From Zancudomyces culisetae HAW-14-8 (Eukaryota; Fungi; Kickxellomycota): DNA of 64,000 nucleotides. The position numbers and the translations under genes were made by a program. Every line of letters starts with the position of its first letter. The stretch's first letter is position 1. Under the pieces are notes generated by a model, which saw nothing but the letters and a program-made list of their open reading frames with translations, made no database searches and was not told the origin of the DNA. The DNA lies in assembly GCA_052426225.1 (NCBI GenBank), contig JBNJNM010000013.1, positions 310,001 to 374,000 of the forward strand. Reading direction: 5' to 3'. Shown here one piece after another: positions 579-39,283 of the stretch.

Positions 579-1745
579 GATACTCTTGGAAAATAAGGAG
601 GAGAATGAGAATGAGATCAAGATTCCGAGCACACTGGAAATAAACGGAATCAAAGTAGCAATGTTCTGGAAGGGCTGCGACCCAATGTGTACCTACTGTA
701 AAGGGCAAGGTCACTGGAAGAACGACTGTCCCGAGCTTGAAAGGAAAGTGGAGGAGCAAATAATTGCCAGACACGAGAGGAAAGCAAAGAAGCAGGCGAT
801 GAAGGAGTTTACAGCTAGAGTAAAAGCAAAACTTGGACCAGTGAAGGCGGTACAAGTACAGACACCTAGATTGGATCCTGGAATGAACCAACAAAGGGAT
901 ATGAGCGTACAGCAAGAGGCTAGAATGATGCCACAGAGTGAACATACGGCCTCTAACACAGTAGGGACAAACCTACAACAGGCCAAAGGAAAAGGCTTGA
1001 AGCTTACTACGATGACCAGTAGTAGTTTTAATAGTGTTAATAGCGTTGGTAGCTTTAATAATACTAAACAAACTGGTTCAAATAAAACTATTATATCAGA
1101 AGAACTATCTTTTGTAGAACAAATTAGCAGAGAGGAGTACGAAAAGAGAAAGGCAAAGGGACAATAATACACCTCTAAAACAAAGATAGTATACCCTAAC
1201 TTACCTACCGAAAAACGAGTAGCACCACTAAATACTACACCAGATCACGTGACCACTGCACCAGCTCAGCCAGATTCGAGATTCGAATTTCGAAATGAGG
1301 AGGGTGCGATAAACGCTGATTCGTTTACAGGGGTTAGAAAACCCCAAACCCGACACCCTAAGGTGATCGACTCAAACCCATCGAGCGAGGGTGTGCAGAT
1401 GGACGAAGATTCAGAATCCGAAATGAGTTGGGAAAAAAGTGGCCAGGTGGGGATTCGAACCCAGGACCACACTCAGGGCGAATTTCAGGATGCACTGAGT
1501 CATGGCGCTGAGTCTAGCGACAATGAGGAGGGTGAAATTAGGGAAGACTAATCACCAAATCTCGACTCAGCGGGGACCAAATGTGTCAGAAATGACCACT
1601 TGGGGACCCCAAAAATTACCATTAATACACGCAGAAATGATCAATAAGGACACTGGACAACAGGAAAAAAGGGATAACAGGAGACAAAAACTCCTGTTAT
1701 GGAACATTGATGAGCTCAAAACGAGCTCAGTAAAGCAAGCAATAA
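579..1745 (+). pseudogene. Disrupted second LINE: ORF1 (gag-like CCHC) plus start of ORF2 endonuclease
   Basis: CTYCKGQGHWKNDC knuckle; ORFs 586-1167 and 1249-1551 are in frame across one TAA; overlapping ORF 1502-1783 contains LLLWNI, resembling the start of an APE endonuclease; truncated near 1745. Confidence 0.65.
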
Positions 1746-1818
1746 TGTATCAAGTGGGAATCGATCCTATACCTTCCGAATAAAAAGGATTAGGCAGTAC
1801 AACAAGCGATATAGGTAC
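1746..1818 (-). pseudogene. Decayed tRNA-like sequence (possibly tRNA-Lys UUU derived)
   Basis: Minus strand 73 nt: GTACCTA...TTGATAC-A (5/7 acceptor pairs), CCTAATCCTTTTTATTCGG anticodon-arm remnant, ATAGG-ATCGATT-CCCAC T-arm/B-box remnant at canonical spacing. Confidence 0.4.
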
Positions 1819-1834
1819 GAAATAACAAACAGAA

Positions 1835-1883
1835 TGTTGTATAATTAAATTTTACTTATAATTATTTATATTTTTCTTATTTA
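1835..1883 (-). repeat. LTR 3'-end fragment, inverted copy of the 4433-4894 LTR family
   Basis: Reverse complement of 4846-4894; cut by the Tc1 insertion. Confidence 0.75.
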
Positions 1884-3451
1884 CAGTGAGTTTCAAAAAT
1901 GTCTCAAAATAATGATAATAATTTTCAAAGTGTAATATCTCGCTCAATAAAATCCAGAAATTAGATAATTTTATATAATATAATGCACAATTGGTATAAT
2001 TTAATTTTATATAATTTGTATTATTATTATTTAAAAATTCATTATATAATTATAAACTGAAAAATTTTTAAAAATGAGACAATTTTGGGAATTTTTCAAA
2101 AAAAAACTTTAAAATTATGTCCACCTTCCTTTAGACTTGATAACTGCCTCTACTCTTTTAGGCATACTATCTATTAGACCAAGTATTGTTTCCGCTGATA
2201 TTAAATTCCATTCCGTTTCTATTCGCTCCCATAATTCGATCATCCCGGACGGAGGTTTACTGTATCTATTTAGGCGTCTTTTGATGATTGCCCATATAGT
2301 TTCGATTGGGTTTAAGTCTGGAGATTGTGGCGGCCAGTCCAATGTATTATATTCCTGGTTTTCAAGCCAGCTGGTAACTAACTTTGCGGTATGTTTAGGA
2401 TCATTGTCATGTTGAAATATTATTGACTTGGGATCCAACTTGTAGTACTTTATTGTATTGCTAAGCTCGTCTTTTAAAATGTTTAAATAACCTTCCTTGT
2501 TTAACATTCCTTCTATTTGGCACATGTAGCCAGTTCCAAATGCTGTGATGCATCCCCAAATCATTAATGATCCACCACCGTGTTTTACGGTCTGGTTAAT
2601 ATTGTGCGGCTGTAGACTCACACCATCACGAACCCAAGTCCATTCATTTCCATCAGATCCAAATCAATTGATTTTAGTTTTGTCGGACCAAATTACTCGT
2701 CTCCAATCATCAGTAGTCCAGTGGCGATGTGATTTTGCGAATCTCAACCTTTTTGCAATATTTTTAAGGCTCAGTTTCGGTTTGGAGGTTATTTTTTTTG
2801 CAACGGCTTTTAGATCATTAAAAGCCCTATATATTGTAAACTTACTTGCACAAACAATATTATCCATTTCTAACTTCTTTTGTATCGAAGTAGCAGTTCG
2901 ATACTCTCCAGATAATATCATCCTAGTACATATTCGCTTGCTTTGGGGTGAAAGCTTCGCTGGACGACCGCGTTTATTAGCCGGTAAATTGATATTCATT
3001 GCTGCTTTAATTCTGTATATTGTTGCTTTACTAACTCCATGTTCTATAATGATTTGGTCAATGCTTCTGCCTTCAAGTAACGCGTTTTTAATATCCAGTT
3101 TACGTTGTTCAGATATCATTTTTTAAAAAATTATTATATTGATTAGTATAATGTTGTTATATATTATAATATGTAAAAGCTTTAAAAATTAAAAATTTGA
3201 ATTCATAATGTTATGATAGTTAAAATTTTTTTTTTGAAAAATTCCCAAAATTTTCTCATTTTATAAAATTTTTTCAATTTAAAATTTCATAATGAATTTT
3301 TAACCAATAAAAATACAGTTTATATATAATCTGAATATAAAATTTGTGCATTATATAATATAAAAAACATATAATTTCTGGATATTATTGAGCGAGATAT
3401 TACACTTTGCAATTCATTATCAATATTTTGAGACATTTTTGAAACTCACTG
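1884..3451 (-). mobile_element. Tc1/mariner DNA transposon with ~230-bp imperfect TIRs
   Basis: Ends CAGTGAGTTTCAAAAATGTCTCAAAATA / TATTTTGAGACATTTTTGAAACTCACTG; TA on both flanks (1882-1883, 3452-3453); TIR similarity extends over ~1884-2112 and ~3222-3451. Confidence 0.93.
2115..3119 (-). pseudogene. Tc1 DD34E transposase with one in-frame stop
   Basis: GRP linker, WSD, QHDND-x-SPDLNPIE with 34-residue D-E spacing; ORFs 2664-3119 and 2115-2621 are in the same frame, separated by TGA at 2664-2666. Confidence 0.9.
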
Positions 3452-3576
3452 TACAATTCTATCGTGCAATAACATATATTTAGTATTTAAATTAAAGTTA
3501 ATTAAACAATATTCTTGTTATCATTAGAATTGAATACACCAATTATATAGAAAAACTAAGTTTTTCTATAACAAAA

Positions 3577-3878
3577 TGTCATATAATTAATGATAGTTCA
3601 AACCTTCTAGCTTTGATTGGCAGTTTATTTATCATATTTAGTTTATCATATTTATTTTATCATATTTATTTCATTGGAGATTGGACTTTTCTCCCTATGG
3701 AGGGTTTTATCCAATTTCTATCCTTGATAACAGGTTAGTGTCACAGAACGAGTTTTATTAGTTAAACAGGTTGTAATTCTTAAGGAATTACAGCTAGGCA
3801 AATGTTATTAATTAAATACTAAGTAAATATTAGAATAAATGTTATGGGAGGTTAGATGTCACCTGATTGGCCATGACA
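3577..3878. repeat. LTR-like fragments (TGTCAT at 3577; TGTCAC..ATGACA 3739-3878)
   Basis: TG..CA bounded AT-rich segments; AAA spacer after a TATAACA end at 3573; no matching TSDs, so boundaries are uncertain. Confidence 0.4.
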
Positions 3879-4894
3879 CACATTTATGGAAAACCATGTT
3901 AGTATTAAGAACAATGAAAAATAAATCAACGGGATACTCGCCTGCAGAAATGCTATATGGAATACAAATGGAAATACCATCAACATGGAAACCTAACGGT
4001 ACAAACGAAAATGAAGAAGAGGAATTTAAAAACAGAATTCAACTAATAAAAGAGGATTTACCACAGATAAGAGAATTAGGAATAAAAGGCTCGGTAAAGG
4101 CTAAAAAGTACGATGAAGTAAGGTATAATCGTAAAGTAGAGATATATAATTTTAAAATTGGAGATTTTGTTTTGAAGTTGATAGAGTATGAACAGGCTAA
4201 GCTAGAAAGAGTTTGGGAGGGACCTTATAAAGTAGAAAACAGATTAGATAAAGGAACTTACATAATCAGCGATCAGTTCGGTAACAGAGACTTAGTACAC
4301 GGCGATATATTAAAGCAATATAATACGAGTACATATATGATACCAGAAGTTACGACCACTTTAAAATCCAAACTACGCAGATTCAGGCAGAAAGCGCAGG
4401 ATGAGGGCATCCACGCTTAAAGAGGAGGGTACTGTCATATAGTGACATGAACCCTTGGTGATAAACTAATATTATATGTTTATCATCAAGTGAAATAATT
4501 AAATTATTAATATACTTTTAGTTTTAGTTTTTTTAGTATTCAATGAAACTGATTCATTGATGTTTTTTCTAAGAGTATTAGTTTATTACTCATTTAAATT
4601 GTTTCAGTATTAGTTTATTTAGAAGTATTAGTTCAATAGTTAGTTATTAGTATATTTATAATACTAGAAAAAGTATTTAAAGGGTTAGTTATTGCATAAG
4701 GAAATAAATATCATTCTATCATACAAGCTTTATAGTAGTAAATAAATAGTTATGATCAACTACAGATGTTTATATTAAGTTTATAATAGTTTCAACTAAG
4801 TTTATAATATATAACAATAATTATACGATACATATTATACATATATAAATAAGAAAAATATAAATAATTATAAGTAAAATTTAATTATACAACA
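3879..4894 (+). mobile_element. 5'-truncated Gypsy element F: integrase C-terminus, PPT and 3' LTR (4433-4894)
   Basis: SPAEMLYG, WEGPY and MIPEV integrase motifs up to 4420; PPT AAGAGGAGGG 4420-4429; LTR TGTCAT..ACAACA followed by AAAC. Confidence 0.85.
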
Positions 4895-4898
4895 AAAC

Positions 4899-5121
4899 TG
4901 TTATATAGTGGAATTATATACCTGTATTTCCTTGTATTTTATTGGTTAATTTAAAAAGTATTATTTTATGTATTAAATAGTCTAGTTTTGAATTAATTAA
5001 TAAATTGTCTTTTTCTCCCACAATAATTATAGTACTAATATATAATAATAAAAGTCCCGTCCTGTATAATACTGGGTAATTATATTACTCAGTAGGACGT
5101 TAAACATGTAATTATACAACA
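4899..5121 (+). repeat. Solo LTR (223 bp), same family as the LTRs of the TRIM-like element at 30349-31357
   Basis: TGTTATATAGTGG..TATACAACA; near-identical to 31135-31357. Confidence 0.88.
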
Positions 5122-5711
5122 AAAAATTGTATGCAAAAGCATCAACTTAAATTTAATAGTACAAATCGATTTATTTTTTAGTCGAATCGATTTTATACTT
5201 TATTAGTGGATTTATTTTTAATCAATTTTATTAGTAAATTATTAGTATAAATTGAAAAAATTTGTAAATCCGACCAAAACCACACTAAAAGTAAAAATAA
5301 ACATATATAGAGAGGCGTAATACTATTTTTTTAGTGTAAGGAAAGGGCCATTTTGGCTATATTTTCCAGGTTTTGGGAGGAATTCTTTTAAATAAAATTA
5401 ATTTTACCAAAAATTGTGGAAATTGTCCAGTTGTGTTCTTTCCGAGGGGGTTTTATAGATAGTGGTTAACTGGCTAGAAATGGTAATCCTGTGTCAGTAT
5501 AAACCACCCTTCTAGGGAACCGTGATTGATATTAGTGGAAGTTTTTTGGGAAAATCCTATTGGGCTAGTACTAAAAAATGAAAACGAATTCAACAAATGG
5601 GGGCTCTGCCGGAAACGGTATGAGGAAAATTTGGGAGAAAAGTTAAATTTTTGGTCAGAAGATTTTCTTTCTAATAACCAAAAATTTGCCGTAAAAGCTT
5701 CGGCTATGTCG

Positions 5712-5904
5712 CCTAGAAGCCATTTATGAGACGAGTTGGACCTTACACCATCTGGGGCCAATGTGGGCTAGTAGGAGGTTTGTTCCTTTTAAATAGGGAA
5801 TAAATTCTCTGAACCACCGGACCAGGTAAGGTAACCACGAAAGCCCTTTTAGGGACTCGCGCTGGTAAATGCGAAACACTTTCAGTGGGGCTAGGAACAT
5901 TGGC
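5712..5904 (+). ncRNA. Structured, pseudoknotted RNA motif in the leader of element A (homologous fold to 14059-14222)
   Basis: Stems CCTAG/CTAGG, CATTTA/TAAATG, CGAG/CTCG, CCTTAC/GTAAGG, CTGG/CCAG, GTGG/CCAC; pseudoknot GCCAATGT(5757-5764)/ACATTGGC(5897-5904); AGUA/GAA loop-E-type internal loop. Confidence 0.7.
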
Positions 5905-8900
5905 TTTAAATACATTTTTCCCTTTAAGATTTTTCTCAATACTTTTTCGGGTTTCATTTACATTTTAGCCTAAATGTAATTGAATTTCCCACATTACCCG
6001 ACCTTTTCTTTTTAGGCTTTTGGGGAATTTAACAAATTGGGACTTGGGATATTAATTAAGTTTAATAGAACATTTCCAAACAGATAAATTCAACAAATGT
6101 CTTTGGGAACTTTTCCCAGTACAGCTTAAAATGCTGTGTTACCTGCGGGAGTTGAAGCAAAATGTGCGTTATGTCGCATACTTTTGGATACTTCCCAGGT
6201 GTTGGTGGTATGTTTATGGGTTTTTAGGCCGATAAGCATATTTTTGGTTGGAAGCGGAAACGAGACGGGTTCGTCTGGATTCCCCAAATATTGAAATCTC
6301 CTAGATACGGTGATAGCTAAAGAAAGTTAATTTTCGTTAATGCTAGCTGTACGGAGACCTTCCAATACTTGGGAGAAGAAAGATGGATACTGGGGGTTTA
6401 CTGCTGAAAAGTCAAATTATGTGTAAGTAACCTAAAAATACATGTACACAAGTCACCAAAGGTGGGCTCAAAACAGAAATGAGACGGACTTCTTTGAGAA
6501 GTACTGGGGATTTCTGCGGCGGGTTTTACACCATATCACCGGCGTCTAGGGACTAAATGCAATGCCATTTAGTCTTAGTGGAAGCCACTAGTAGTAATGA
6601 GGATAATAGGATGTAAAAATCCTAATTTTTTCTTACTACACCGAGTCTAGGAGCCCGACCATAGGTTACTAGACCGGCAACTTTGTAGCTAACTTTAAGA
6701 ATAACATCCTTAAAGTGGGGAAAAGCTACCAGTGACAGTGGGAAGGTAAGAGTTAACCAACCTACTAAAGTCACTTGGTAAGTTTATGCGAGCTATATGC
6801 AAGCTTATTCTAGGCCACAGTTTTGCTGGGAAACTACCTGGAGTTGAACTCCAGTAGTAAAAGTGTAAGAAGTTTAAAGGTAGAAATAAACTTCACACTT
6901 TAAATAGGGAGATCCCGTATCTATCTCCAGATACACTCATAAGTTTTGAGAAGTTGAAGTTAGTTATCCAAATCCTTTTTCAAGATTTAGGGAAACTGAA
7001 TCTGACTTCTCGGGTGGTTTTAAAGGAATAATTTTTTCTTTAATTGGTTTTAAGTAAGGAAATAACTGGGGAAATAATTTCTACCCTACCAGTTAACCCA
7101 GAAACTATAAGAGTAATAAAATACTCGATTCCAAAACCGAGTGAATGAAACAGGTGGAGGAATTTTGTGGTAAAGTTCCGTAAAATATGGAACTAAATTG
7201 GTATTAGGTTTGGTAGTAATATTTAAACAAGATCAGCCTAATATTATCGGGAAACTAAAAAGTTTACCCAGTAAGTCAGTAAATGGTAGTACCCAAAAAA
7301 GGGACACCTTGGGTTCGGTAGAACAAACGGAAGTATTCCAAACCCTCCAACCTACGTGGTAAGAGTACTTTCAGTTCTGGGGACCTTTCTACACCTTAAG
7401 TAGCTAATAAGGTGAGATAAATATTTACGAGGTGATAACCCTGCAGGAATCAACCTACGTCATTAATGGGACAGGAGCAGAACTGGTTTACTCTCTTTGT
7501 CCGGCCTAACCATTCTATCAAAATAAGGATAGATAAGTTAGATGGGGGTCTTAGTATAACCAATTACGGAGTAGCCAAAGCACTCCAAGAGTAAAGGATA
7601 CCATGGAGGTCAATTCCTAGGTATTCTACAGTCAATTGGGTCATGTAAGTTCAACATTCCCAAGGAGCTAGGGAGAGGTAGAATTTATTATTTATTTCAA
7701 CCAAACCCAATAGTGGTAACAAAGTAAGATGCACAATATTGTCGTCTTAGGAGTTCTGTTAGAGCGGCGCGTCTTCAGAACGGTAAATATCATTTAACTA
7801 GTTTCTACTTTCTAGTTAATGTTATTCGGAACCGAAACATACTGAAAAGATTATATTCAATAATCTTTTATTACACTAGATTAAATCCCTCCAACGTTCG
7901 AAAGATCTAGTGTGGAAATATGAAATGGGGGTAAAACAAATCCGATGTCCAATCTTTTGGGCGGGGAGGTCCTCCCTTCCAAACCGTTCGGGAGTTGGGT
8001 AAAACATCAAACCCAAACTGTTCATCTGTCACGATTGACACTAGGTACTATTGTTGCTTGAAAATATTTTATTTAGGATAAGATAATATTTTATCGCTAA
8101 GGATTTCATAGCGAAAAAATATTACTTTATATATTCAATAATATTACTAATAAAAGCATGTACTAATATTATAATTAACTATTGTAAGATTAATGTTATA
8201 ATTATAATTATGGTTTTGTGTTAGTATCATTACTTAAGTAAATAATTAAAACAACAAAATGTTTCAATTAAAATGAGTGTTTTGAATCAGTATTGTAACA
8301 ATACTAATTCAAAATCTTTTCATGTCATATTCATGACATCATCACTTCAAAACTGACTGAACTTTTGGTAACTTATATTGGGAATTAAATTTATAAATAC
8401 AAGTCAGAAAAACATAGCAGATAAAAAGCAGGGACACAGTCCAAATTAAAACAAAGTAAAACTAATCAAAACCAGCAAAGAAATTTAAAATTAAAATTTA
8501 TTGAGTCGAAATACTAAAAATCAAATCAGACTCCAAATCAAATAAAATCGAAATCAAATCCTATAAATCTAAAAGTTTATCCAACTTTCAACGGTTTAAC
8601 AAGCTTTCTAAACAATACTAAACTACAACAATATAAAATAAATTAAAAATTAAAAAAAATATTATATAATAAAAATATTATAATAAAATAATATATAATA
8701 AAAATATTGTTAAAAAATTAAACATAAAAATATAAAAAATATTTAAATTATAAAATTACAAAATAACAAAAAATTATCAATTATTTAAAGTTTAACAACA
8801 AAATCAAAATGTTTAGTAAAAGAGCAGAAAAGTTGAGAGAGGATACTACTGATGATGAATCAGAGGAGGTCGAAGTACAGGAGATGTCAGAATCGCATTA

Positions 8901-9025
8901 TTTACCCATAAGTTTTAATATTTATTTTTAATCATATTTAATTACCTTTGAATCCTAACTTGGGAACATTAAGTTTCCCAACTTAAATAAATTAGTTTCC
9001 TGACATTTTGGGAAACTTCTAATTA

Positions 9026-9994
9026 TTGGTTGAAGAGTTAATGATGGTCCACCAATTAGATGAGATCGCAAAATTAGCTATGCAACAAGCTTTGCAAGAA
9101 AGTCAAGCTCAAGCCCAGGCTCAAGCCCAGACACCCGCCCAAGTCCCCAGTCAGTTGCAGAATTTGCCTGCACCAAATCCGCAGCCAAGGATTGATGGTA
9201 TCAGAATACCAGAAATCCAGAAATACTCAGGAGAATCAGGAAGGTTCCGAGCCTTCACCGCCGAGATCAAGCGCCAGTTCTGGGCCAGACCAGACGTGTT
9301 CCAGAGTGACCATAACAAGATATGGTTCATCAGTTCTCACCTTGCCGGTCATGCTGCCCTGTGGTTCGATAACCTTATCGATACCCAATCACCGTTGCTC
9401 TCAGATTTCAAAGGGTTTGAGAATGAATTTCAAAAGAGATTCTCAGATCCTGGCCACCAAGCCCGAGCTATCACCCAGCTTCATAGTTGCCGCCAGTCCC
9501 AGCGTTCCGTTCTGGAATTTGCAACCGAGTTCAGAAACCTCGCCTCTCTCAGTGGATTCAACGAGCCAGCCAAAATCCACCTGTTTTACATCGGATTGGA
9601 TACTAGCCTTGTCCAGCGCCTTGCCACTGAACCGCTACCAAACACCTTGGACCAGCTCATTGATCAGGTGATTGAGCTTGAGAACAGAATCAATGCCCGC
9701 AGTGCCTACCTGCCCAAGAGAAGCGTCCCATTCCGCAACTGGAGTACTCCGGCTCCACCGGTCTTCCCCCGTCCAGCCATGCCTGTCCCAGATCACCAGA
9801 CTTCTGAGCCAATGGACGTTGATGCCGTCACCTCCCGTCCAAGAGCACCGCTAGATACAGCCGAACGCCAGAGAAGATTAGCCAATAATCTTTGTCTATA
9901 CTGTGGTCAGCCGAACCACATTCTCCGTAACTGTCCGCTCCGCAGGCCAAGACCCCCTATACCTGGGGTGCCAAAAGACAGTGCTCAGATGTAG
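9026..9994 (+). CDS. Gag of chromovirus B (true start probably an ATG at 9041/9044)
   Basis: Retrotransposon capsid-like region, PMDVD motif, CLYCGQPNHILRNC knuckle. Confidence 0.9.
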   Translation: MVEELMMVHQLDEIAKLAMQQALQESQAQAQAQAQTPAQVPSQLQNLPAPNPQPRIDGIRIPEIQKYSGESGRFRAFTAEIKRQFWARPDVFQSDHNKIWFISSHLAGHAALWFDNLIDTQSPLLSDFKGFENEFQKRFSDPGHQARAITQLHSCRQSQRSVLEFATEFRNLASLSGFNEPAKIHLFYIGLDTSLVQRLATEPLPNTLDQLIDQVIELENRINARSAYLPKRSVPFRNWSTPAPPVFPRPAMPVPDHQTSEPMDVDAVTSRPRAPLDTAERQRRLANNLCLYCGQPNHILRNCPLRRPRPPIPGVPKDSAQM

Positions 9995-12900
9995 TCCGGG
10001 AGTTACTCCTGAGCGTAGCAAATAATTCTAATATTTCTAGTAATAAATTTCATATTAAAGTTGTTTTAAATAATCTACACGAACTTGTTGCATTAGTGGA
10101 CTCCGGTGCTTCAGCCAACTTTATTCGTCAAGATTTATTAGAAAAACTAAACCTCCCAACCAAAGAAGCAGAAAAAACCATCGTCCTAGAAAGTGTTGAT
10201 GGTCACCAGATATACCCAGGGGGCATAAATGTCAAGGTTGATAATGCCCATATCAAGTCCGGTCCTAACCACTCTGAACACCTAGACCTTATCCCGATTC
10301 CAACCAATCACGCTGACATTATTTTTGGATTACCCTGGTTACGCAAACACAATCCTAGTATAACTTGGCCAGACCTCCAGATCCACTTCGACTCTGACTT
10401 TTGCAGTACAAATTGTGTTGATACCCACTCCATCCAGGCCGTGTTCAAGTCACCTGATGAACCAGATCCAGATCCAGTAGAACAAAATATTAGTCAGAAT
10501 ACGTCCACAAACCCAACTATCCTCCAAAGGGTGTTGAATAGATTATCAACTACCCTGCTTCCACACAGTGCCAAGTTGCTCGAATCGGTCAAGTTGGACG
10601 ATTCAAACACTGAAAATCAAAGATTTTCACCGCCTCCGTCTCCTGATCTCCCCAGCCCAGCTCCGTCAAATCCATACGCCAGAATTGAAGAGATTCTTCC
10701 TGTTCCTGTTCCTGCACCAGTCCAATCAGTCACTCCAGAACCTGAAACCCAAAGTTTGCCCAAACCCACCGCTATTGAGAATCGAGTAAATAACCATGTT
10801 AAGCAAATTCCTGAGCCCCGTCGTCCAGTAACCCCTGTTCCAAAAGTACCACTCAGACCTGAACTTCCCAAAGCAATCCTGAAGAAAATTGAGCCAAGAG
10901 AACCAGTCGTCAGATCCCGGCCATTTCATAAAAAAACCCCAGTCACCACCCCCGAGCCAGAATATTCCTTGGATCCAGATCCTGTAAATTTTGCCGTTTC
11001 TGAGTCCCCGCTAGAGTACTTGGAAGAATTCCCGCAACTTCCAGTAATATACTCTGAATTCAAGGAAGTGTTCAATCCCAAGTCTGCCGTCTCACTTCCT
11101 CCTCACCGCCGTTATGACTGTCCTGTCAACACCAAAGAGGGTTACACCCCATACTGGGGGCCAATATACCCGCTATCTGAAGTAGAGTTAGAGTCTCTAA
11201 GAGGTTACATCCGCGAAAACCTCACCAATGGCTTCATCAGACGCTCTGTCTCCCCTGCCGGTGCACCAATCATGTTTGTAAAGAAGAAGTCTGGAGACTT
11301 GCGCCTTTGTGTTGACTACCGCCGATTGAACGAAGCTACCATCAAGAATAGGTACCCATTACCTAGGATTGATGAGGCGTTCGATCGGCTGCGTACAGCC
11401 AAGGTCTTTACAAAATTGGATCTCAAAGGTGCCTACAACTTAGTGCGGATCAAGGAAGGTGACGAGTGGAAAACTGCATTTAGGTGCAGATATGGCCACT
11501 TTGAGTACCAGGTCATGCCATTTGGCTTGACAAATGCTCCCGCTACCTTTCAGCACTTTATCAATGATGTGTTACGAGATGTATTGGATCTCTATGCAAT
11601 TGCATACCTTGACGACATCTTTATATTTTCCAATGACACTGACACTCACATCAATCATGTGAAATCTGTTCTGAAAAAGCTGCTTGAAAATGGTCTGTAC
11701 TGTAACGCCGAAAAATGTCACTTCCATATCAGGGAAGTTGAATTTCTAGGCCATGTTGTGTCTTCAGATGGAATAGCCACCGATCCTGCTAAAGTCAAGT
11801 GTGTAAAGGAATGGCTACCACCCACCAATGTCAAGGAGGTCCAGAAGTTTCTCGGTTTTGCCAATTACTACCGAAAGTTTATCCCATACTTCTCACTGAA
11901 AGCCCTGCCAATCACAAGACTTCTGAAAAAGGATACACCGTTCGTTTGGAGTAAGGAGGCAGGTGAAGCCTTTAATACTCTTATCCAGGATCTCACCACT
12001 TCCCCCGTTCTCAGATACCCTGACCCAGGAAAACAGTTTATTCTGGAAACTGACGCCTCAGACTACGCCATTGGGGCTGCTCTGTCCCAAGAAGATGAAA
12101 ACGGTGATCTCCGTCCTTGTGCCTACTACTCTTACAAACTCAACACTGCCGAATCCAACTATAATATCTATGACAAGGAACTTTTGGCAATCATCAAGGC
12201 TCTCAAAGAATGGCGACATCATCTGGAAGGCTCCTCCATCCCGTTCAAGATTCTTACAGATCATAAGAATCTGGAGACCTTTAAAAATCTGAAGTCACTC
12301 AACAGAAGACACGCAAGGTGGTCTCTTGATCTCAGTAGATTCAGCTTCATCATAACCTACAGGCCTGGATCTCAAGGAGGCAAACCTGACGCTCTTTCTC
12401 GTTTGCCCAATCACACACCTGATAAGGTCGCCAACAACAACATCATAGGTGAAGACCACTTCATAGACACTATCAGCATAGTGGACAGTGATTTTGCTCA
12501 AGAAATCGCCAAATCCAGCAAAGCCCATCTAGAAGGATTATTGGATGCCGCAAGATACCAGAGCAGCCATAAGTCTAACGAGCCAGTAGAAGTTGAAGAT
12601 GGGATTGTAATGCTTGGAAACCGTGTTGTCGTCCCCGACAAAATGAAGCCGCAAGTTGTAAGTTCTAGACATGACAGTGGCCCAGCCGGCCATTTTGGTG
12701 CTAAGAAGACATTGGAGCTCGTGGAACGAGACTTTTGGTTTCCAGGAATGCGCAAATTTATTAAAGAGTTTGTTCAAACCTGTGATACATGCAATAGATC
12801 AAAGGACAGAAGACACAAAGTTTACGGTAAACTACTTCCGCTACCCGCTCCTTCAGGCCCATGGAAATATATTACCATGGATTTCATAACTGATCTTCCT

Positions 12901-13920
12901 CCATCCAACAAGCACACTACTATTATGGTAGTTGTAGACAGGTTCACTAAAATGAGCCATTTCATCCCGCTTAAGAAGCTGCCATCCTCAGAAGAAACTG
13001 CCTCCGCCTTCTTTACCCACGTATTCAAGCTTCATGGACTTCCAGACGTCATAATCTCAGACCGTGGAACCCAATTCTCGTCCAAATTTTGGAGTTCACT
13101 ATTCAAACTGCTCAAAGTTGATACTAGAATGTCTACAGCCTTCCATCCAGAGACAGACGGTCAAACGGAGCGGGTGAATCAAACATTGGAACAGTATCTA
13201 CGCTGTTTCATCAACTATCAGCAAGATAATTGGTTTGAACTGCTCCCAATTGCCGAATTTGCTTATAACAACACTCTCCACTCCAGCACTAATACTTCTC
13301 CTTTCTTTGCTCTATATGGTTACCATCCAAGATTTGATCCTCAAATCACTAAAAACGTTCACGTCCCCAGCGCTTCTGATAGGATAAAACAACTCAAAGA
13401 ACTTCAATCAGCCCTCACTTCCATACTTAACAAGAAATCTCAGGAATATAAAAAGTATGCTGATGTAAACCGATCTGAACATCCAAAGTATAAACTAGGT
13501 GACAAGGTTTGGCTATCCAGCCAAAATATCAAAACTCAAAGGCCTTCTAAAAAGTTTGGCCTTAGACTTCTAGGACCTTTCACCATCTCTAAAATTATCA
13601 ATCCTGTTTCTGTCCGTTTAGACCTCCCGCCATCAATGAAAATCCATAACACTTTTCATGTCTCGTTATTGGAACCGTATATCGAACCCAGCAGTAACCG
13701 CAGATTAATAAACAGTCTTCCTCCACCTCTAATTATAAATGGAAATAAAGAATATGAAGTTAAGGCTATTTTGGATTCTAAGCTTGTACGGGGTAAAAAA
13801 TATTACTTAGTTGATTGGAAAGGCTTTGACATAAGTGAAAGAAGCTGGGAGCCGATTGAAAACATAAACGCGCCTCAACTATTGAAAAAATACTATAAGA
13901 CATATCACAACAAACCATAA
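9970..13920 (+). CDS. Pol of chromovirus B (PR-RT-RH-IN-chromodomain), -1 frame relative to gag
   Basis: Frame open upstream of 10096 through the gag stop; LVDSGA, YLDD, ETDAS, integrase, and YEVKAIL..YLVDWKGF..SWEP chromodomain. Confidence 0.92.
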   Translation, partial: AKRQCSDVVRELLLSVANNSNISSNKFHIKVVLNNLHELVALVDSGASANFIRQDLLEKLNLPTKEAEKTIVLESVDGHQIYPGGINVKVDNAHIKSGPNHSEHLDLIPIPTNHADIIFGLPWLRKHNPSITWPDLQIHFDSDFCSTNCVDTHSIQAVFKSPDEPDPDPVEQNISQNTSTNPTILQRVLNRLSTTLLPHSAKLLESVKLDDSNTENQRFSPPPSPDLPSPAPSNPYARIEEILPVPVPAPVQSVTPEPETQSLPKPTAIENRVNNHVKQIPEPRRPVTPVPKVPLRPELPKAILKKIEPREPVVRSRPFHKKTPVTTPEPEYSLDPDPVNFAVSESPLEYLEEFPQLPVIYSEFKEVFNPKSAVSLPPHRRYDCPVNTKEGYTPYWGPIYPLSEVELESLRGYIRENLTNGFIRRSVSPAGAPIMFVKKKSGDLRLCVDYRRLNEATIKNRYPLPRIDEAFDRLRTAKVFTKLDLKGAYNLVRIKEGDEWKTAFRCRYGHFEYQVMPFGLTNAPATFQHFINDVLRDVLDLYAIAYLDDIFIFSNDTDTHINHVKSVLKKLLENGLYCNAEKCHFHIREVEFLGHVVSSDGIATDPAKVKCVKEWLPPTNVKEVQKFLGFANYYRKFIPYFSLKALPITRLLKKDTPFVWSKEAGEAFNTLIQDLTTSPVLRYPDPGKQFILETDASDYAIGAALSQEDENGDLRPCAYYSYKLNTAESNYNIYDKELLAIIKALKEWRHHLEGSSIPFKILTDHKNLETFKNLKSLNRRHARWSLDLSRFSFIITYRPGSQGGKPDALSRLPNHTPDKVANNNIIGEDHFIDTISIVDSDFAQEIAKSSKAHLEGLLDAARYQSSHKSNEPVEVEDGIVMLGNRVVVPDKMKPQVVSSRHDSGPAGHFGAKKTLELVERDFWFPGMRKFIKEFVQTCDTCNRSKDRRHKVYGKLLPLPAPSGPWKYITMDFITDLPPSNKHTTIMVVVDRFTKMSHFIPLKKLPSSEETASAFFTHVFKLHGLPDVIISDRGTQFSSKFWSSLFKLLKVDTRMSTAFHPETDGQTERVNQTLEQYLRCFINYQQDNWFELLPIAEFAYNNTLHSSTNTSPFFALYGYHPRFDPQITKNVHVPSASDRIKQLKELQSALTSILNKKSQEYKKYADVNRSEHPKYKLGDKVWLSSQNIKTQRPSKKFGLRLLGPFTISKIINPVSVRLDLPPSMKIHNTFHVSLLEPYIEPSSNRRLINSLPPPLIINGNKEYEVKAILDSKLVRGKKYYLVDWKGFDISERSWEPIENINAPQLLKKYYKTYHNKP

Positions 13921-14043
13921 GAGCAACATTATATTTTATTATTTAACCAATATTATACCTAAATACTTATCAAAACAACTATAAAAACAACCTAAAAACA
14001 ACTAAAAAGCATAAAAAATTATAAAAGAAAAAATAAAAAAAAA

Positions 14044-14301
14044 TGAACTTAGGAGGGCGCTAACGTCTTGGGCCACACAATCACGTGATTCGAATTAACT
14101 GCTCGAGATCCCGAAGGAGTTATCGGAGAGGTGAAACGGTCCGGTACTAGTCCCGAAGGACGTTATCGCGCACATTGGCCCCGTGAAACATCACATCCAC
14201 TCTACAGCTAATTACTTCCCAATTACGGTCTTACAGCGAAGGATCGAACCAGGGTCCTGCAGAATACAAGTTCGACGCCTTAGCCACTCGACTATAAGCT
14301 C
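14044..14301 (-). ncRNA. Putative RNA polymerase III ncRNA (~258 nt) with tRNA-like head, carried antisense by element B
   Basis: A box TAGTCGAGTGG at +8, B box GGTTCGATCC, 5' GAGCUUA pairing with 3' UAAGUUC-A, T9 terminator (A-run 14035-14043), two cUUCGg hairpins, TATATAAAA at about -31 to -23 once element C is removed (25191-25199). Confidence 0.75.
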
Positions 14302-16597
14302 ACATTTTTGTTATAGAATTTCACAATTCTATGATTATTTAATATTCTTATTGTATTATATGTTTATTACTAAGTATATTATTTTTGTATTATTGTTCTT
14401 TTTAATACTATATATGTTTAACTTAATATTTTGTTAAGATGTGTTTTTATTTAATTCAAAGTGGGCGGTTGCTTTAACCCCCAGATAATAATATAATTAA
14501 TGAGGAAATATAATGTAAATAACTAACTAAACTATTGGACAAAAACCACAGGGGGAAAAAAGGTCCAATCTCAAAACTATTAACTAAAAACCTAATGAAT
14601 AAATAAAGCTAATTATATAAAATCGTATCTTCATACGACAGAACCCCGGTCCCAGATTGGGCCTACCGGTCTAGGTGTACGGAAGCGTACCAACTTGGTT
14701 CTTAATGGTGTACTAATCTCTGGTATCATGTATCTACTTTGATGATAATGCTTTAGCATATCACCGTTTACTAGATCGCGGTTCCCTTCACTATCTGATA
14801 TGACGTAAGTTCCTTTGTTCAACCTTCGGTCTACCTTGTATGGTCCTTCCCATACTTGTTCTAGCTTTGGCATGGGTTGTTCGGTCAGTTTAAGTACTAT
14901 ATCACCCTCCTTAAATGCTGAGGGTCTCACTCTGCTGTCGTATCTGATTTTTTCTTTTTCTTTTTCAGCGATACTGTTACTTAGTCCTACATTTCTAAGT
15001 TCAGGTATATCGGTTTTTATTGCATCAATCCTTTCTTGTATAGCTATATCGAGATCGCTAATTTCGGGTGGTGGTGCCCATAGGGCTGGCGTTGTTAATT
15101 TTACGCCGTATAATAATTCCGCAGGACTATATTTCGTAGCTCGGTTTCGCATCGTTCGAATGGCAAGCAGAGTTTTCCAAAGGTACTTGTCCCAATTACC
15201 TTTGTTCTTATGACACTGCTTCACTAACGTATTCTTCAGAGTCTGATTAAGCCGTTCCACCTGCCCATTACTCTGGGGCCTATAGGAAGTGGTGGGTGTG
15301 TGCTTAATCTGGAGGAAGTCGTAAACCTTGGCTGCTTGTTCACTGATGAAACCTGATCCTCTGTCCGTTATTATTTGATCCGGTACGCCATAGTGTTGCA
15401 CTATTTGTGTAATAATAAAATTTACTATTGTTTCAGTCTTTATGCTTTCAACAGCCTCAGCCACGGGCCACTTTGTAAAATAATCGATTCCAGTGAGTAT
15501 AAAGCGATTTCCTGTTGACGATATTGGGTTTATTGGCCCCACTGCGTCTAATCCAAATATACTAAATGGCTTATATGAATATATAGGATGAAGTCTGTTT
15601 CTTTTTATACGTCCTCCTTTAAATAGCTGACAATCATGGCATTGCTCTACAACTTTTCTTACTGTTTCGAAAAGCCCTTCGCCTGTATAAGTGTCTTTCA
15701 TTCGTTCCCATGTATTCTCTACCCCATTATGATTTTCGTTATGTATTCGCTCTACTGTGTCGCGCATGTGCCTTCGTGAAGTACTTCTTTAATATTTCCT
15801 TTTATATATCGAACTAGTTTATCGTCTCTAACCCTGTATTTTGTTGCCCTGTTTCTTATTTTTAACTGTTGGCTTTCGCTACTATTTTCTGGATACCTAG
15901 AGTTAGTGATATAGTTTTTTATAGCATTATATTCAATAGATGATAGTGTAAAAATTTGAATCTCATTAGGTGATTCTTCAGCGTCCTTTGATACCAAACG
16001 TGAAAGCGCGTCGGCAGGATTCGTTTTTCCTGGACAATGTTCAATAGTGTAGTCGTAGTTTCTCAGCATCATAGCCCATCGGGCTACTCTGCCTGTAATC
16101 TCTTTGGAATTGAATAACTGCAATAACGACTTATGGTCAGTGTGTCATGAACTGATTCTAGAATGTTCGAAAACGTTCTAGAATCATCTGATTTTACACC
16201 GCAGTAATGTTTAGAATGTTCCCCAACATTCTAGAACATTACCGAAAATTCACATTATTTCTTAATTTTTATTACGTAATAATTTTCACATGTTTAATTT
16301 TAATAGCATTCGAGTTTGATTTTTGTTTGATTAATAATCAAACACGTTTTTCTTTACATTTCATTTTTAGCTATTCCGCAGTTTTCATAGTGATTTTGTT
16401 CAAAAACCAAGGCTGGAAAAAAGTATAAAAAGGGTACAATTTTCCTGTCTTGGATTCAGTATCTAGTATCTTGTATACATTCATACAATAAACTTTAATA
16501 ATAATAAATATAACTCTCCTGACTCCAGATCTTGACACTATACTAGATCAAAATATTATATTTATTATTTTCTGACACCAGCCTAAGTATTTTAACC

Positions 16598-17818
16598 ATG
16601 GAACCGTTTAGCCCAGAACAAGTTGAATTCCTCAACAAAGCCGCCGTGACCCTGCCAACAGTTGAAGAAGCCCTCCAGCAACTACTAATAAGAGTAGAAA
16701 AAGCCGAGTCTGCCATCAAGGAACACCCTGCCACGGTATCCAAGAAAATTTATGACAAGGTCAAAGCAGACACTACCAAGTCCATCCAGACCATTCTTGA
16801 CTCCATGAACAACCTCCAGTCCGATATCCAGAATTCAGACCAGCTAACCCAAAGCGCCATACAGGCCAACCAGTTGGAAATCCAATCCCTTCAGGACCAG
16901 CTCAGTACCCTCAGGAACGAAGTCATACTTTATATAACTGAAAACCGTGCCACCAAAGTTGCTAGTACTTCTGAACCTAGTATCAAAGTAAGACACCCAG
17001 ACACATTTTCAAGAAAACCCTCCGCCTGTTCCAACTTCTTTTCACAGCTTGCTCTCGTCTTTGCCGCTTCACCCGATAAATTCAACACAGACTCAAGTAA
17101 AGTCTTGTATGCCATCTCCTACCTCTCAGGCACACCATTCAGTTACATGGAACCTTACCTCATGAAAGCAAACCTTCCACAGTCTGATCGTCCTGCCATC
17201 CTCTCCAACTACAATCTGTTTAAAGAAACTATCACTCGTGCCTTTGGTGATCCCAACCATATTGAGAATGCTGATAGGGCAATCCGCCAACTCCGCCAAA
17301 CCACTTCCGTTGCCGCATATGCCACCGAGTTTAGACGCCTACAGATGTTAATTGACTGGAACCAACCACCTTTGATCTCACAGTTTCTATCCGGTCTCAA
17401 GTACAACGTATCCCAAGAACTCAACCGTAGAGAACCAATAGAAGACATCGATACCCTGATCTCTACAGCCATCCAGATCGACAACCGCCTTTTCAGCCAT
17501 CCACAACGTCGTCAACCTCCAGTTAACCCCACTGCAACTATGCCACCCAAACCCACTGCTTACAACCCGTTTGCTTCACCTGTTTCTGCACCATCTACCA
17601 CTCCACCAGCTAATAGTGATGGACCGCAACCAATGGATCTCAGTACCGCTTCATCGACTAGAAGACCACCACTTACTCCTGCTCAAAGAGCATACCGTAT
17701 CGAAAACAACCTCTGTCTCTATTGTGGCGGTAATGACCATTTCAACATCAACTGTCCAAAGAAACGCCACAACATGTCCAGCATTACACCAACACAGGAA
17801 AACGACACCGCCCAGTAG
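16598..17818 (+). CDS. Gag of chromovirus D
   Basis: Coiled-coil N-terminus, capsid-like region, PMDL motif, CLYCGGNDHFNINC knuckle. Confidence 0.92.
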   Translation: MEPFSPEQVEFLNKAAVTLPTVEEALQQLLIRVEKAESAIKEHPATVSKKIYDKVKADTTKSIQTILDSMNNLQSDIQNSDQLTQSAIQANQLEIQSLQDQLSTLRNEVILYITENRATKVASTSEPSIKVRHPDTFSRKPSACSNFFSQLALVFAASPDKFNTDSSKVLYAISYLSGTPFSYMEPYLMKANLPQSDRPAILSNYNLFKETITRAFGDPNHIENADRAIRQLRQTTSVAAYATEFRRLQMLIDWNQPPLISQFLSGLKYNVSQELNRREPIEDIDTLISTAIQIDNRLFSHPQRRQPPVNPTATMPPKPTAYNPFASPVSAPSTTPPANSDGPQPMDLSTASSTRRPPLTPAQRAYRIENNLCLYCGGNDHFNINCPKKRHNMSSITPTQENDTAQ

Positions 17819-17840
17819 ACAGTAAGGGACACCTATTGGG
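17797..17840 (+). promoter_or_regulatory. Putative -1 programmed ribosomal frameshift signal
   Basis: G GAA AAC heptamer in the gag frame, 6-nt spacer, stem GCCCAGTAG/CTATTGGGC. Confidence 0.75.
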
Positions 17841-20800
17841 CAACTTAGCCAGTCCCCACGCCACTGTAACCACTCCTGTTTCTGACACCCAATCTCCTGA
17901 TAAACCAAACACCTTGACCATTCCTGTAACCATCTTGTCCAAGCACCACCACATCAAAACCTACGCTATGGTTGATTCTGGTGCTTCGTCCTCGTTCATT
18001 GACGCCACCTTTGCTCTAAAAAACAATCTACCATCTATATCTAGAAAAATGACAATCACGCTCGCTGACGGATCAAAGCTTAGATCCAACTCTGCCTCCC
18101 AAGTAACACTAAAAATCAACGATAACCATCTCGAAAGTATCTATCTGCAACAAATAGACCTTGGATCTTCACCAATCATCCTTGGTCTTTCCTGGCTTCA
18201 ACAACACAATCCTGACATCAACTGGACTGAGAACATAGTCCATCTGCCTTGTACCTTGACTTCTTGTGGGCCCAACCATGTCAACCTAGACATATCTCTT
18301 GTGGGCTCAAACCAGTTTAAAGAACATCTGAAGGCACCAGACACTGTCTATGCTGGTGCAATTACCGTGAACAATCTTGAATCCCTTGTAGCTCCTGAAT
18401 CTTGTGAAAATCTTTGTCTTGTCTCTGAATCTAATCCTGAAACCCCTGTTACTCCTGTAATCCCTGAAAAGTATAAAATGTTTGAATCTGTCTTCTCTGA
18501 ATCCCAATCTGCCAAACTGCCTGAACATCGTCCATATGATCATACCATTCCTTTGCTTCCTGACTCAAAGATACCATATGGCCCATTGTACAACCTCTCC
18601 CAATTGGAACTAAAGACCCTGTACGACTACATTCAGGAAAACCTAGCCAATGGTTTTATCCAACGCTCTGAATCCCCGGCTGGGGCTCCCGTCCTATTTG
18701 TAAAAAAGAAAGATGGTAGTCTCCGGTTGTGCGTCGACTATAGAGCCCTGAATAAGGTCACTGTCCCCAACCGTGCAGCCTTGCCACTCATCTCTGAAAC
18801 CTTGGATCGGCTTGGCAAAGCCAAGATATTCACCAAGCTGGATATGAAATCCGCATACCACATGATCAGGATCTCGCCTGGTGAAGAATGGAAGACCGCG
18901 TTTCGTACACGCTACGGCCACTTCGAGTATAAGGTCATGCCGTTTGGCCTTATGAATGCTCCAGCCACGTTCCAGTCCTTTGTTAACGATCTCTTCCGTG
19001 AATACATTGATCAATTCCTTGTTGTGTACATCGATGATCTGTTAATCTACTCAGATGATATCGATAAGCACTATGACCACGTCTGCCTTGTCTTGAAGAA
19101 GCTTCAGGAACACAATCTCACCCTCAAGCTAGAGAAATGTGAGTTTGATGTACAATCAGTACAGTTCCTCGGTTTTGTAATTGGCCCCAACGGAATCTCT
19201 ATGGATCCATCTAAAGTATCCAGCGTTACCGAATGAAAGACACCAACTTGTGTCCGTGACGTTCAGGTATTCCTTGGCCTTACAAACTTCTACCGCCGTT
19301 TTATTTTGAACTACTCCAAGATATCTCTGCCGCTCACCGCCTTGTTGAAAAAAGGTGACCAATTCCAGTGGACACCCAAAGCTGAAGAAGCTTTCGCCTT
19401 GCTAAAAGAAACCATGATCAGTAACCCAGTCTTAGCTCACTACAATCCTGACCAGCCTTGTATCATCGAAACCGATGCATCAGATTTTGCATTAGGTGCC
19501 ATTTGCAGCCAGTATGACAACGAGGGACAACTCCACCCTGTTGCATACTACTCCCGGAAACTCCTGCCTGCTGAAGTGAATTATCAAATCTATGATAAGG
19601 AACTGTTAGCAATTATCGACGCTTTTGCTCACTGGCGTCACTACCTTGAATTTTCTGTACACCCAACCGTTGTTATGACCGACCATAAAAACTTGGAATA
19701 CTTCTCCACTACCAGAAATCTTAGTCGCCGCCAAGTCAGATGGTCAGAATACCTCAGTAACTTCAACTTTGTCATCAAGTACCGCCCTGGAAAACAGAAC
19801 ACTGCCGCCGATGCTCTTTCTCGGAAAGACCAACCTTGGAAGGGGGGTGACTCCCGTACTGACCAAAACAAAATAACTTTGCTGCCTCCTGATATATTCT
19901 TGAAGTCCATGACTAGTACACCTGTTGAACCTTTGTCATCCACGCTCATGAACAACATCAAGTCACTACAACCCAAAGACACGTACTTTGGACCCATTTA
20001 CACTGACTTATCCAAGAAACCTGATTTCCATGAAAAGTTCGCTCTTGTTGACAATCTTCTGCACTATGATGGACTAATCTGTATCCCCTCAGACGACAAC
20101 ATCAAAAGAACAATTCTGATTGAATGCCATGATTCCCCTGCTGCCGGCCACTTTGGAAATGCAAAGACGTACGAACTTGTATCTCGCAACTTTTACTGGC
20201 CAACCATGAGAAAATATATCAAAGACTACATCTCTGGTTGCGATACCTGTCAACGCAACAAATCCTCTCGCCATAAACCATATGGCTACCTCGCTCCACT
20301 TCCCGTTCCTGATTCACCTTGGTCATCTGTTTCTGTCGACTTCATCACTCAGCTACCTCCATCCAATAACTTTACTGCAATCTGTGTATTTGTGGATCGC
20401 CTTACCAAGATGGCGCATTTTGCTCCCACAACCAATGAAATTGATGCTGAAGGTACTGCAGATCTATTTATCCAACATGTCTTCTGCAAACATGGGCTCC
20501 CTAAAGACATCGTATCTGATAGAGGTGTGACCTTCAATTCATCATTCATGCGTACTCTAATGAAATCACTGAATATTGAACAGAAAATGTCCACCGCATT
20601 CCATCCTCAGACAGATGGACAAACTGAACGCGTAAACTCAGTATTGGAACAGTATCTCAGGTGCTACATTGATTACCAACAAACTGATTGGTCAAAGTGG
20701 TTACCAATTGCTGAATTCGCCTACAACAACACATCTCATGCTTCTACTAAAACCACACCTTTCTACGCCAACTATGGCTTCCATCCACGCTTCTCAGTCA

Positions 20801-21414
20801 TAATCCCTCGTACTCAAGTTTTAAATCCTGCCTCCTCTGATAGATCCAAACGACTATCTGATATCCACCAAGAACTGAAGTTTAACATCTCCCTTGCCCT
20901 TGAAGACCATGAGAAATACTACAACCGAAAAGTATCATCACAACCTGACTTCAACATTGGTGATCTTGTCTATCTATCAACTAAAAACATCAGGACTCAA
21001 AGACCAAGCAAGAAGCTTGACTATCGGAAACTTGGTCCATTCAAAGTATTGGAAAAGATTGGACAAAGATCATACAAACTTCAGCTACCACACACAATGA
21101 AGATTCACCCAGTATTCCACGTCAATCTCCTTGAACCTTGTAAACCAGATCTGATCCCAGACAGACTATCAAAACCGCTTCCACCTGTGATCATTGACGG
21201 TCAAGAAGAATATGAAGTTGAGAAAATCCTAGATAGTAAAATATTTGGTAGAACTGTCAAATACCTGGTACACTGGAAAGGATACCCAGACACTGAACGT
21301 ACCTGGCAAACATATTCTGACTTAGCAAATGCAAAATATCTTGTCACTGAATTCCATCGTCACCATCCTGAAAAACCAAAGCCACCACAAATGCTTCACG
21401 GAGCTCAGCCTTAA
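17797..21414 (+). pseudogene. Pol of chromovirus D (PR-RT-RH-IN-chromodomain) with in-frame TGA at 19234-19236
   Basis: MVDSGA, YIDD, ETDAS, chromodomain YEVEKIL..YLVHWKGY; TGA replaces the Trp seen in EWLPP of element B; -1 frame relative to gag. Confidence 0.9.
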
Positions 21415-39212: not shown

Positions 39213-39283
39213 GCCGTTGTAGTATAGTGGCAGTACATCGCGTTGTGGCCGCGTCGACCTTGGTTCGATTCCAGGCAACGGCA
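39213..39283 (+). tRNA. tRNA-His (GUG)
   Basis: GCCGTTG/CAACGGC acceptor stem, CGCG-TTGTGGC-CGCG anticodon arm, CTTGG-TTCGATT-CCAGG T arm, no encoded G-1 or CCA, TTTTT at 39287-39291. Confidence 0.95.

Follow-up and report, generated by a model that had tools for sequence, protein, structure and literature searches.

A covarying RNA fold carried by two Ty3/gypsy retrotransposons of Zancudomyces culisetae, possibly derived from a small RNA polymerase III gene

In leader-promoter genes of RNA polymerase III (pol III), such as yeast RPR1 and SNR52, and in tRNA-linked units, an upstream segment drives a downstream RNA. Downstream RNAs linked to a tRNA are freed by tRNase Z, and further tRNA-linked pol III units comprise plant tRNA-snoRNA, Yarrowia tRNA-5S and gammaherpesvirus tRNA-miRNA units. 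Pol III RNAs are also selectively packaged in retroviral and Ty particles. In plants, the Cassandra terminal-repeat retrotransposons in miniature (TRIMs) carry 5S-derived pol III modules (PMC7215508; bioRxiv 10.1101/2023.07.14.548913). The present analysis concerns a structured RNA found in two copies, A and B, within long terminal repeat (LTR) retrotransposons of the fungus Zancudomyces culisetae HAW-14-8 (Kickxellomycota), in a stretch of 64,000 nucleotides (GenBank assembly GCA_052426225.1, contig JBNJNM010000013.1, positions 310,001 to 374,000 of the forward strand) that is referred to below as the window and in whose numbering all coordinates are given.

As in Cassandra, an LTR element appears to bear a pol III RNA module of cellular type that comes with a promoter and a terminator and has kept the fold of the RNA (PMC7215508; bioRxiv 10.1101/2023.07.14.548913). 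The module lies in the LTRs of Cassandra, whereas here it is found in the 3' untranslated region (UTR) of one element, antisense, and in the leader of another, sense; the hosts here are autonomous, the RNA is neither 5S nor catalogued, and no cellular progenitor was seen. Copy B resembles the leader-promoter and tRNA-linked genes in that an upstream segment with A and B boxes is predicted to drive a downstream RNA that would then be cut free and that ends in an oligo-T run; unlike them, its RNA is without an Rfam match, its leader forms no cloverleaf and the whole unit lies inside a retrotransposon. The two copies, lettered independently of the host elements described further below, are as follows.

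5712-5904, + strand: copy A of the structured RNA, 193 nt, with P1, P2/P2b, the P3-P4-P5 arm, P6, P8 and a 3' tail
14222-14059, − strand: copy B of the structured RNA, 164 nt, with helices as in A and two cUUCGg hairpins

Both ends of the fold are closed by P1 (5 bp, 4 compensatory pairs), which is followed by AAG and then by P2 (10 bp, 4 compensatory pairs, one G.G in A); after a 2x2 loop comes P2b, a GAG/CUC helix that is invariant between A and B. A three-way junction bears the long P3-P4-P5 arm, the internal loop of which holds the invariant strands GGGGCCAAUGUG and ACCGGACC, and the short P6 hairpin; in copy A the arm is capped by a long variable hairpin. The 3' side of the fold consists, in order, of the P2 3' strand, CGAA, the P8 hairpin (CAC/GUG), the P1 3' strand, one purine and a tail of 8 nt. 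The copies are collinear within 1-2 nt over their first 55 nt and last 90 nt, the cap hairpin of P5 being the sole large length difference, and in their alignment the positions of the helices are fixed within 1 nt by the invariant flanking strands. Exact occurrences of the 12-mer GGGGCCAATGTG and the 8-mer ACCGGACC in the window are confined to A and B. The helices and conserved strands named in the original prediction, which had been made by a reader from the sequence alone, were all present and in the same order in A and B, and the spacing of 13 nt from GGA to GGGGCC was verified in both. Its 6-bp P2 was likewise found, but the helix extends to 10 bp and is followed by the GAG/CUC helix, and the P8 hairpin had been missed.

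The sequence of A alone and the helices of the original prediction went into a covariance model (R1), with which the whole window was scanned on both strands, filters off. B was recovered end to end (model positions 1-193; 14222-14059, − strand) with 47.4 bits (E 1.8e-9), the best background score over the 128 kb of both strands being 12 bits, whereas the A sequence modelled without base pairs (R2) gave B 5.9 bits (E 0.5), below a background match of 6.8 bits; the E-values of both models are rough, having been obtained by a short calibration. Comparison of the two scores therefore assigns about 41 bits to base pairing. The model of both copies (R3) scores A at 221 bits. In the alignment, which was fitted to the structure and contains two sequences, 95% of the pair cells were canonical, compared with 31-47% when the 3' partners were slid by 1-3 columns, and 15 pairs were changed on both sides yet remained paired, compared with 1-4 in the slid controls. 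Pairs with both bases changed numbered 17, of which 15 were canonical (binomial P about 2e-4, with 4/9 expected by chance). G.U pairs outnumbered A.C pairs by 10 to 2, which indicates the + strand as the RNA strand of A and the − strand as that of B. The helices had been picked with both sequences known, which could inflate the R1 score; this bias is limited, since the invariant strands fix the register of each helix and since folding of single sequences independently recovers P1 in both copies and P2 with the GAG/CUC helix in B. The covariation claimed in the original prediction is thus borne out, and it is held with high confidence that A and B share a real, selected RNA fold. By sequence alone, in an all-against-all comparison of the 64 kb, their likeness is borderline: the pair was unreported by blastn (word size 7, E cut-off 1000), nhmmer with A as query did not find B, and the local A-B alignment scores 40, compared with 22.6 +/- 3.1 (maximum 38) for dinucleotide shuffles.

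The 3' tail had also been predicted to form a pseudoknot with the internal loop of the arm. In A, the tail can pair with GCCAAUGU through eight of eight Watson-Crick pairs (-10.5 kcal/mol), as claimed. In B, the corresponding pairing is weak (-3.5 kcal/mol), with 6 Watson-Crick pairs besides one G.U and one A.C; none of its pairs shows a double (compensatory) change between A and B, and the pseudoknot strand overlaps P5 by 2 nt. A pseudoknot between tail and internal loop is considered plausible as a model.

A search of the whole window with Rfam 15 (4227 families) at gathering thresholds returned a tRNA-His only, with nothing on A or B. When matches of E up to 10 were admitted on short stretches, six weak, unrelated matches were obtained for 5500-6100 and none for 13900-14450, so that neither copy matches an Rfam 15 family, in line with the novelty that had been supposed. 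Among the candidates considered, hammerhead, HDV-like, twister, pistol, hatchet, group I/II, 5S, U6 and TPP had no Rfam match in A or B. RNase P/MRP was rejected by inspection (its pseudoknot strands stand in the wrong order here) and had no Rfam match; the same applies to telomerase RNA, of which no template-like repeat is seen, and to a 5S-type module as in Cassandra, the Alu domain of signal recognition particle (SRP) RNA and Y RNA.

Further members were sought with the A model and with the A+B model, filters off, and no third copy was found in the window; none was found in two element loci of Smittium culicis or in nine metagenome element loci. A scan for the pattern of GGGGCCAATGTG and ACCGGACC separated by 20-50 bases gave 1 match in viral contigs and 27 in metagenome contigs, and all 28 were rejected as bacterial or viral coding DNA, on which the matches of R3 were local only and at most 18 bits. 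A scan of viral contigs for relatives of element D, the host of copy A, found nothing. The closest proteins to both host elements are only about 54% identical (Gag-Pol of D; Pol of chromovirus A, the host of copy B) and come in both cases from SRR18067333, a single Logan sequencing run that is probably derived from a related fungus. A literature search on the motif strings and on Harpellales retrotransposons returned nothing relevant to such an RNA.

The surroundings of copy B resemble those of a pol III gene and comprise the following features, together with a tRNA gene of the window that serves for comparison.

14299-14229, − strand: tRNA-like leader of B, 71 nt, directly 5' of B on the same strand
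14043-14035, − strand: T9 run resembling a pol III terminator, 15 nt past the B tail
14309-14640, − strand: 3' LTR of the Ty3-like element B, whose LTR pair is 100% identical
39213-39283, + strand: tRNA-His, the comparison case for targeting of pol III start sites

The leader has an acceptor-like stem of 7 bp (CUUAUAG/CUGUAAG), a candidate A box, TAGTCGAGTGG, at 14294-14284 (8/9 specified positions of TRGCNNAGTGG) and a candidate B box, GGTTCGATCCT, at 14250-14240 (8/9 specified positions of GGTTCGANNCC), the two boxes standing at tRNA-like spacing. The acceptor-like stem plus one base is followed by CCGUAA (starting at 14228), directly 5' of P1. With leader, RNA body and oligo-T terminator, B looks from its sequence like a self-standing pol III-type transcription unit, the strand of which is antisense to the host chromovirus. 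Ty3 and elements like it insert where pol III starts transcription. Between the end of the 3' LTR of element B and the tRNA-like leader downstream of it, which has the same orientation, there are 9-10 nt, and the arrangement recurs at tRNA-His, where the 3' LTR of another Ty3-like element, E, ends 7 nt upstream (39205), again in the same orientation. Given Ty3-type targeting, the landing site of element B is an indication from within the genome that the B unit was occupied by the pol III machinery, and recently so, since the LTRs of element B are still identical. Elsewhere in the window, a relic resembling the 3' half of a tRNA (1436-1500, − strand) contains a perfect B box, GGTTCGAATCC (1451-1461), followed by T6; ARAGORN makes no call there.

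Copy A can be extended on both sides.

5689-5919, + strand: extended copy A, with CCGUAA (5689-5694), an extra AGCUUCGGCU hairpin (5696-5705), the core, UAAAUACAUUUUU and T5 (5915-5919)

The sequence shared with B begins at CCGUAA (5689 in A), which is the predicted tRNase Z cut in B, and in A an extra UUCG hairpin stands between CCGUAA and P1. The shared sequence ends, 3' of the tail, in UAARUNCAUUUUU (UAAAUACAUUUUU in A, 5907-5919, versus UAAGUUCAUUUUU in B). Upstream of copy A there is neither an A box nor a B box, and a T5 run at 5647-5651 would stop pol III arriving from that side. The 115 nt upstream of A were also considered as a decayed tRNA-like leader and rejected, the alignment not being significant. 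These boundaries are suggestive of a promoter-less copy of a processed transcript, reaching from CCGUAA to T5.

A nest of Ty3/gypsy elements makes up the left half of the window, and the hosts of the two copies and their relatives are arranged in it as listed, with PBS and PPT standing for primer-binding site and polypurine tract and ORF for open reading frame.

5122-5596, + strand: 5' LTR of element D, Ty3-like and without chromodomain; its 3' LTR lies at about 29752-30345
5598-5612, + strand: PBS of element D, TGGGGGCTCTGCCGG, the same as in element E
5597-8808, + strand: leader of element D, 3.2 kb, ORF-free, holding copy A; the gag ATG is at 8809
8885-25348, + strand: chromovirus 'element A', inserted in D gag, with 121-bp LTRs and the target-site duplication GGAGA
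14309-25171: element B, Ty3-like, with identical LTRs, inserted in the 3' UTR of chromovirus A
16142-21822: chromovirus C, with identical LTRs and the target duplication CAGTG, inserted in element B
32821-39205: element E, related to D, with 66% nucleotide identity to D in pol and the same PBS

Copy A sits 115 nt past the 5' LTR of D, sense and just after the PBS. When the nested element is skipped together with a single copy of its target duplication, the gag frame of D runs on into the ORF at 25395-29720, a joined reading that served solely as a frame check. In chromovirus A, gag occupies 9026-9994 and pol 10096-13920, with a PPT before the 3' LTR; the B unit lies antisense between the pol stop (13920) and the PPT, in a 3' UTR made up of 13921-14308 and 25177-25227. 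Target-site duplications, PBS and PPT and the frame check thus place both copies physically within LTR retrotransposons, as the original prediction had it. Its description of the two hosts as unrelated stands in so far as they belong to different lineages, but both are Ty3/gypsy and so not wholly unrelated. According to the R1 and R3 scans, the module is absent from E, which has a leader of 419 nt, and from chromovirus C, which is of the same broad clade as chromovirus A and has a 3' UTR of 12 nt. The LTR pairs in the nest are 98-100% identical.

Two further observations concern the hosts. Just 3' of the 5' LTR of chromovirus A (9006-9030), TTTTGGGAAACTTCTAATTA resembles the 5' end of the B RNA (14208-14222) in the same sense and is therefore complementary to the 3' UTR of chromovirus A itself; this could allow 5'-3' pairing of the element, or could be due to chance. 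In the leader of D, windows of 150 nt have a mean folding z of -1.96, compared with -1.05 in D pol, and several windows reach z -4 to -5 (about 6500-6950, 7100-7250 and 7550). Rfam gave no match on the rest of this leader, which may hold further structured modules or captured RNAs.

The best explanation of A and B is that both are copies of a single small structured RNA, hitherto uncatalogued, and that they are old and have diverged. That this RNA stands for a new family of pol III RNAs, small and structured, two of which were taken up as passengers by LTR retrotransposons, is put forward tentatively, as a reading that we judge nearly as apt to be right as wrong. Divergence has reached saturation in the helices but is slight within the LTR pairs, so the RNA family should be much older than the insertions and more members must exist. 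The original prediction had proposed a retrotransposon-borne structured RNA; that the RNA is intrinsic to the retrotransposons is not supported. B has pol III-type boxes and an oligo-T terminator of its own, antisense to its host, while A keeps T5 and starts at the cut predicted in B; place and orientation differ between the two copies, and the sister elements E and C are without the module. A captured gene consequently fits better than a leader element with a decoy.

According to this proposal, the fungus would have, or would once have had, a family of small RNA genes read by pol III, and one such gene would have been taken up by each of two LTR retrotransposons. The leader of B would act as promoter and would be removed by RNase P and tRNase Z after the discriminator base, leaving an RNA with CCGUAA as its 5' end. 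For B, the probable route is read-through transduction together with flanking DNA, and an antisense location between pol and the PPT would follow from it. For A, it is probably a template switch of reverse transcriptase (RT) to a small RNA packaged alongside, from which a sense location directly behind the PBS would result. Retrotransposons would repeatedly come to lie beside such genes through the landing of Ty3-like elements at pol III start sites. Since the fold has been kept by selection, its structure should be what the RNA acts by, the most plausible role being that of a scaffold for proteins. Like 7SL RNA and Alu/B1, it would be a pol III RNA of small size, compact and conserved in fold, with copies whose helices covary, packaging being a feature of 7SL and Alu; the architecture is different, and SRP RNA matches neither A nor B at any threshold.

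Several points weigh against the capture of a pol III gene. The known members number two, and a genomic copy standing free of an element was seen neither in the 64-kb window nor in the fetched element loci. The leader of B (14229-14299) forms no cloverleaf, ARAGORN and the Rfam tRNA model being silent on it; it folds as an elongated hairpin in which only the acceptor-like stem is kept, and its processing by RNase P or tRNase Z is assumed. The boundary matches at CCGUAA and the T run are short and AT-rich, and the flank alignments alone are not significant. The minimum free energy of B is no better than that of shuffles (z +1.55) and that of A (z -1.9) owes its value mainly to the variable hairpin, so that the case rests on covariation and not on stability. 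The capture routes of A and B are ones that we infer, and the helices of A, all intact apart from one G.G, are also compatible with a function within element D.

The last point leads to the possibility that the RNA is a cis-acting element of D, serving in packaging, dimerisation or translation, and that B is a pol III-expressed mimic in a competing chromovirus, titrating the Gag or RT of D. Copy A lies in the usual place of packaging signals with hardly a broken helix, both copies are inside elements and the whole leader of D is unusually structured; as a multi-helix, possibly pseudoknotted structure between PBS and gag, copy A also resembles retroviral Psi, the 5' pseudoknot of Ty1 and the bipartite PBS of Ty3. 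In contrast to such packaging and priming structures, its fold is absent from the sister element E in spite of the shared PBS, and a homologue under a pol III-type promoter of its own lies antisense in another element; chromovirus C and the fetched element loci are also without a copy, a terminator-like T5 and a start at the predicted processing site of B are both needless for a leader element, and saturated helices imply an age far beyond that of the insertions. We regard this account as unlikely, if worth keeping in view. A bolder form of it, in which A and B represent a new eukaryotic class of structured RNA (catalytic, or the RNA component of an unknown particle) that LTR retrotransposons would turn against one another or their host, with the leader fold of D serving in packaging, priming or escape from silencing and a pol III decoy deployed by the rival chromovirus, is likewise thought to have a small but real chance of being correct. 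Somewhat less probable still is a pol III retroposon resembling a short interspersed nuclear element (SINE), its body joined to a tRNA-derived head, that landed by chance in two retrotransposons. B would then be the complete unit of tRNA-like head with A and B boxes, body and T run, and A, which is headless, would resemble the 5'-truncated copies left by retroposition, in a region that is a transposon nest; at neither unit, however, are there target-site duplications, the tails are T-rich on the RNA strand and not A-rich or like those of long interspersed nuclear elements (LINEs), no LINE is seen in the window, and two copies in 64 kb that differ in nearly every helix are unlike a recently amplified family.

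A new self-cleaving ribozyme, borne by retroelements in the manner of the HDV-like ribozymes of R2 and others or of the hammerheads of Penelope-like elements and retrozymes, would account for the invariant unpaired strands, the multi-helix junctions, the possible pseudoknot and the association with retroelements. Judged on sequence, this is very unlikely: A and B contain no core motif of those ribozymes and match no Rfam ribozyme family at any threshold, there is no indication of a cleavage site, the pseudoknot is weak in B, and the position is unsuited to 5' processing, cleavage within the leader of D being such as to part the PBS from the genome. Least credible of all is a chance resemblance shaped by the choice of helices. 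The borderline likeness of the sequences, on which blastn is silent and the local score barely exceeds the shuffle maximum, and the 28 chance matches of the two-motif pattern in public collections would suit it, but the structure model run by the same procedure over the window separates B from the background by 47 to 12 bits, and neither the recovery of P1 (both copies) and P2/P2b (B) by single-sequence folds nor the fixing of helix positions within 1 nt is to be expected from it.

Other features of the window were recorded alongside. One of its ORFs, a subtilase, has 100% identity to the NCBI protein of Z. culisetae, a member of the Harpellales. Upstream of tRNA-His, a series of LTR elements in one orientation (4887-39283) comprises a solo LTR X, D, a TRIM F, a solo LTR Z, an unassigned stretch of 770 nt and E, the neighbours being only 3-7 nt apart (AAAC, ACAC, ACA, AAC, AACACAA), which suggests that elements landed again and again at a single pol III start site. 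A TRIM-like miniature LTR element at 30348-31357 has LTRs of 223 bp with about 560 nt between them, the PBS TGGTGATCCAGCC, a PPT and no ORF, and a solo LTR of this element is found at 4887-5121. Three ORFs of exactly 193 aa (586-1167, 2545-3126 and 3839-4420), the last of which resembles the C-terminus of the D integrase at the DNA level, and inverted repeats at 1822-2113 and 3220-3521 are probably remnants of older elements (586-4420). Just downstream of tRNA-His (39502-40631), diverged tandem-like repeats of about 325 nt are present (39935-40259 versus 40307-40631, 63% identical).

To our knowledge, few eukaryotic RNAs outside the classical ones adopt a large, compact fold with conserved unpaired strands, and every addition to them has opened up a field of its own. 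The module described here would be carried by autonomous LTR retrotransposons of an early-diverging fungus, an arrangement of pol III small RNAs known so far mainly from the Cassandra elements of plants. If the RNA is that of the host, an unannotated gene family would exist in Harpellales; if it is owned by the elements, it would be a new cis-acting or decoy RNA. In either case, the covariance model and the exact coordinates allow a direct test.

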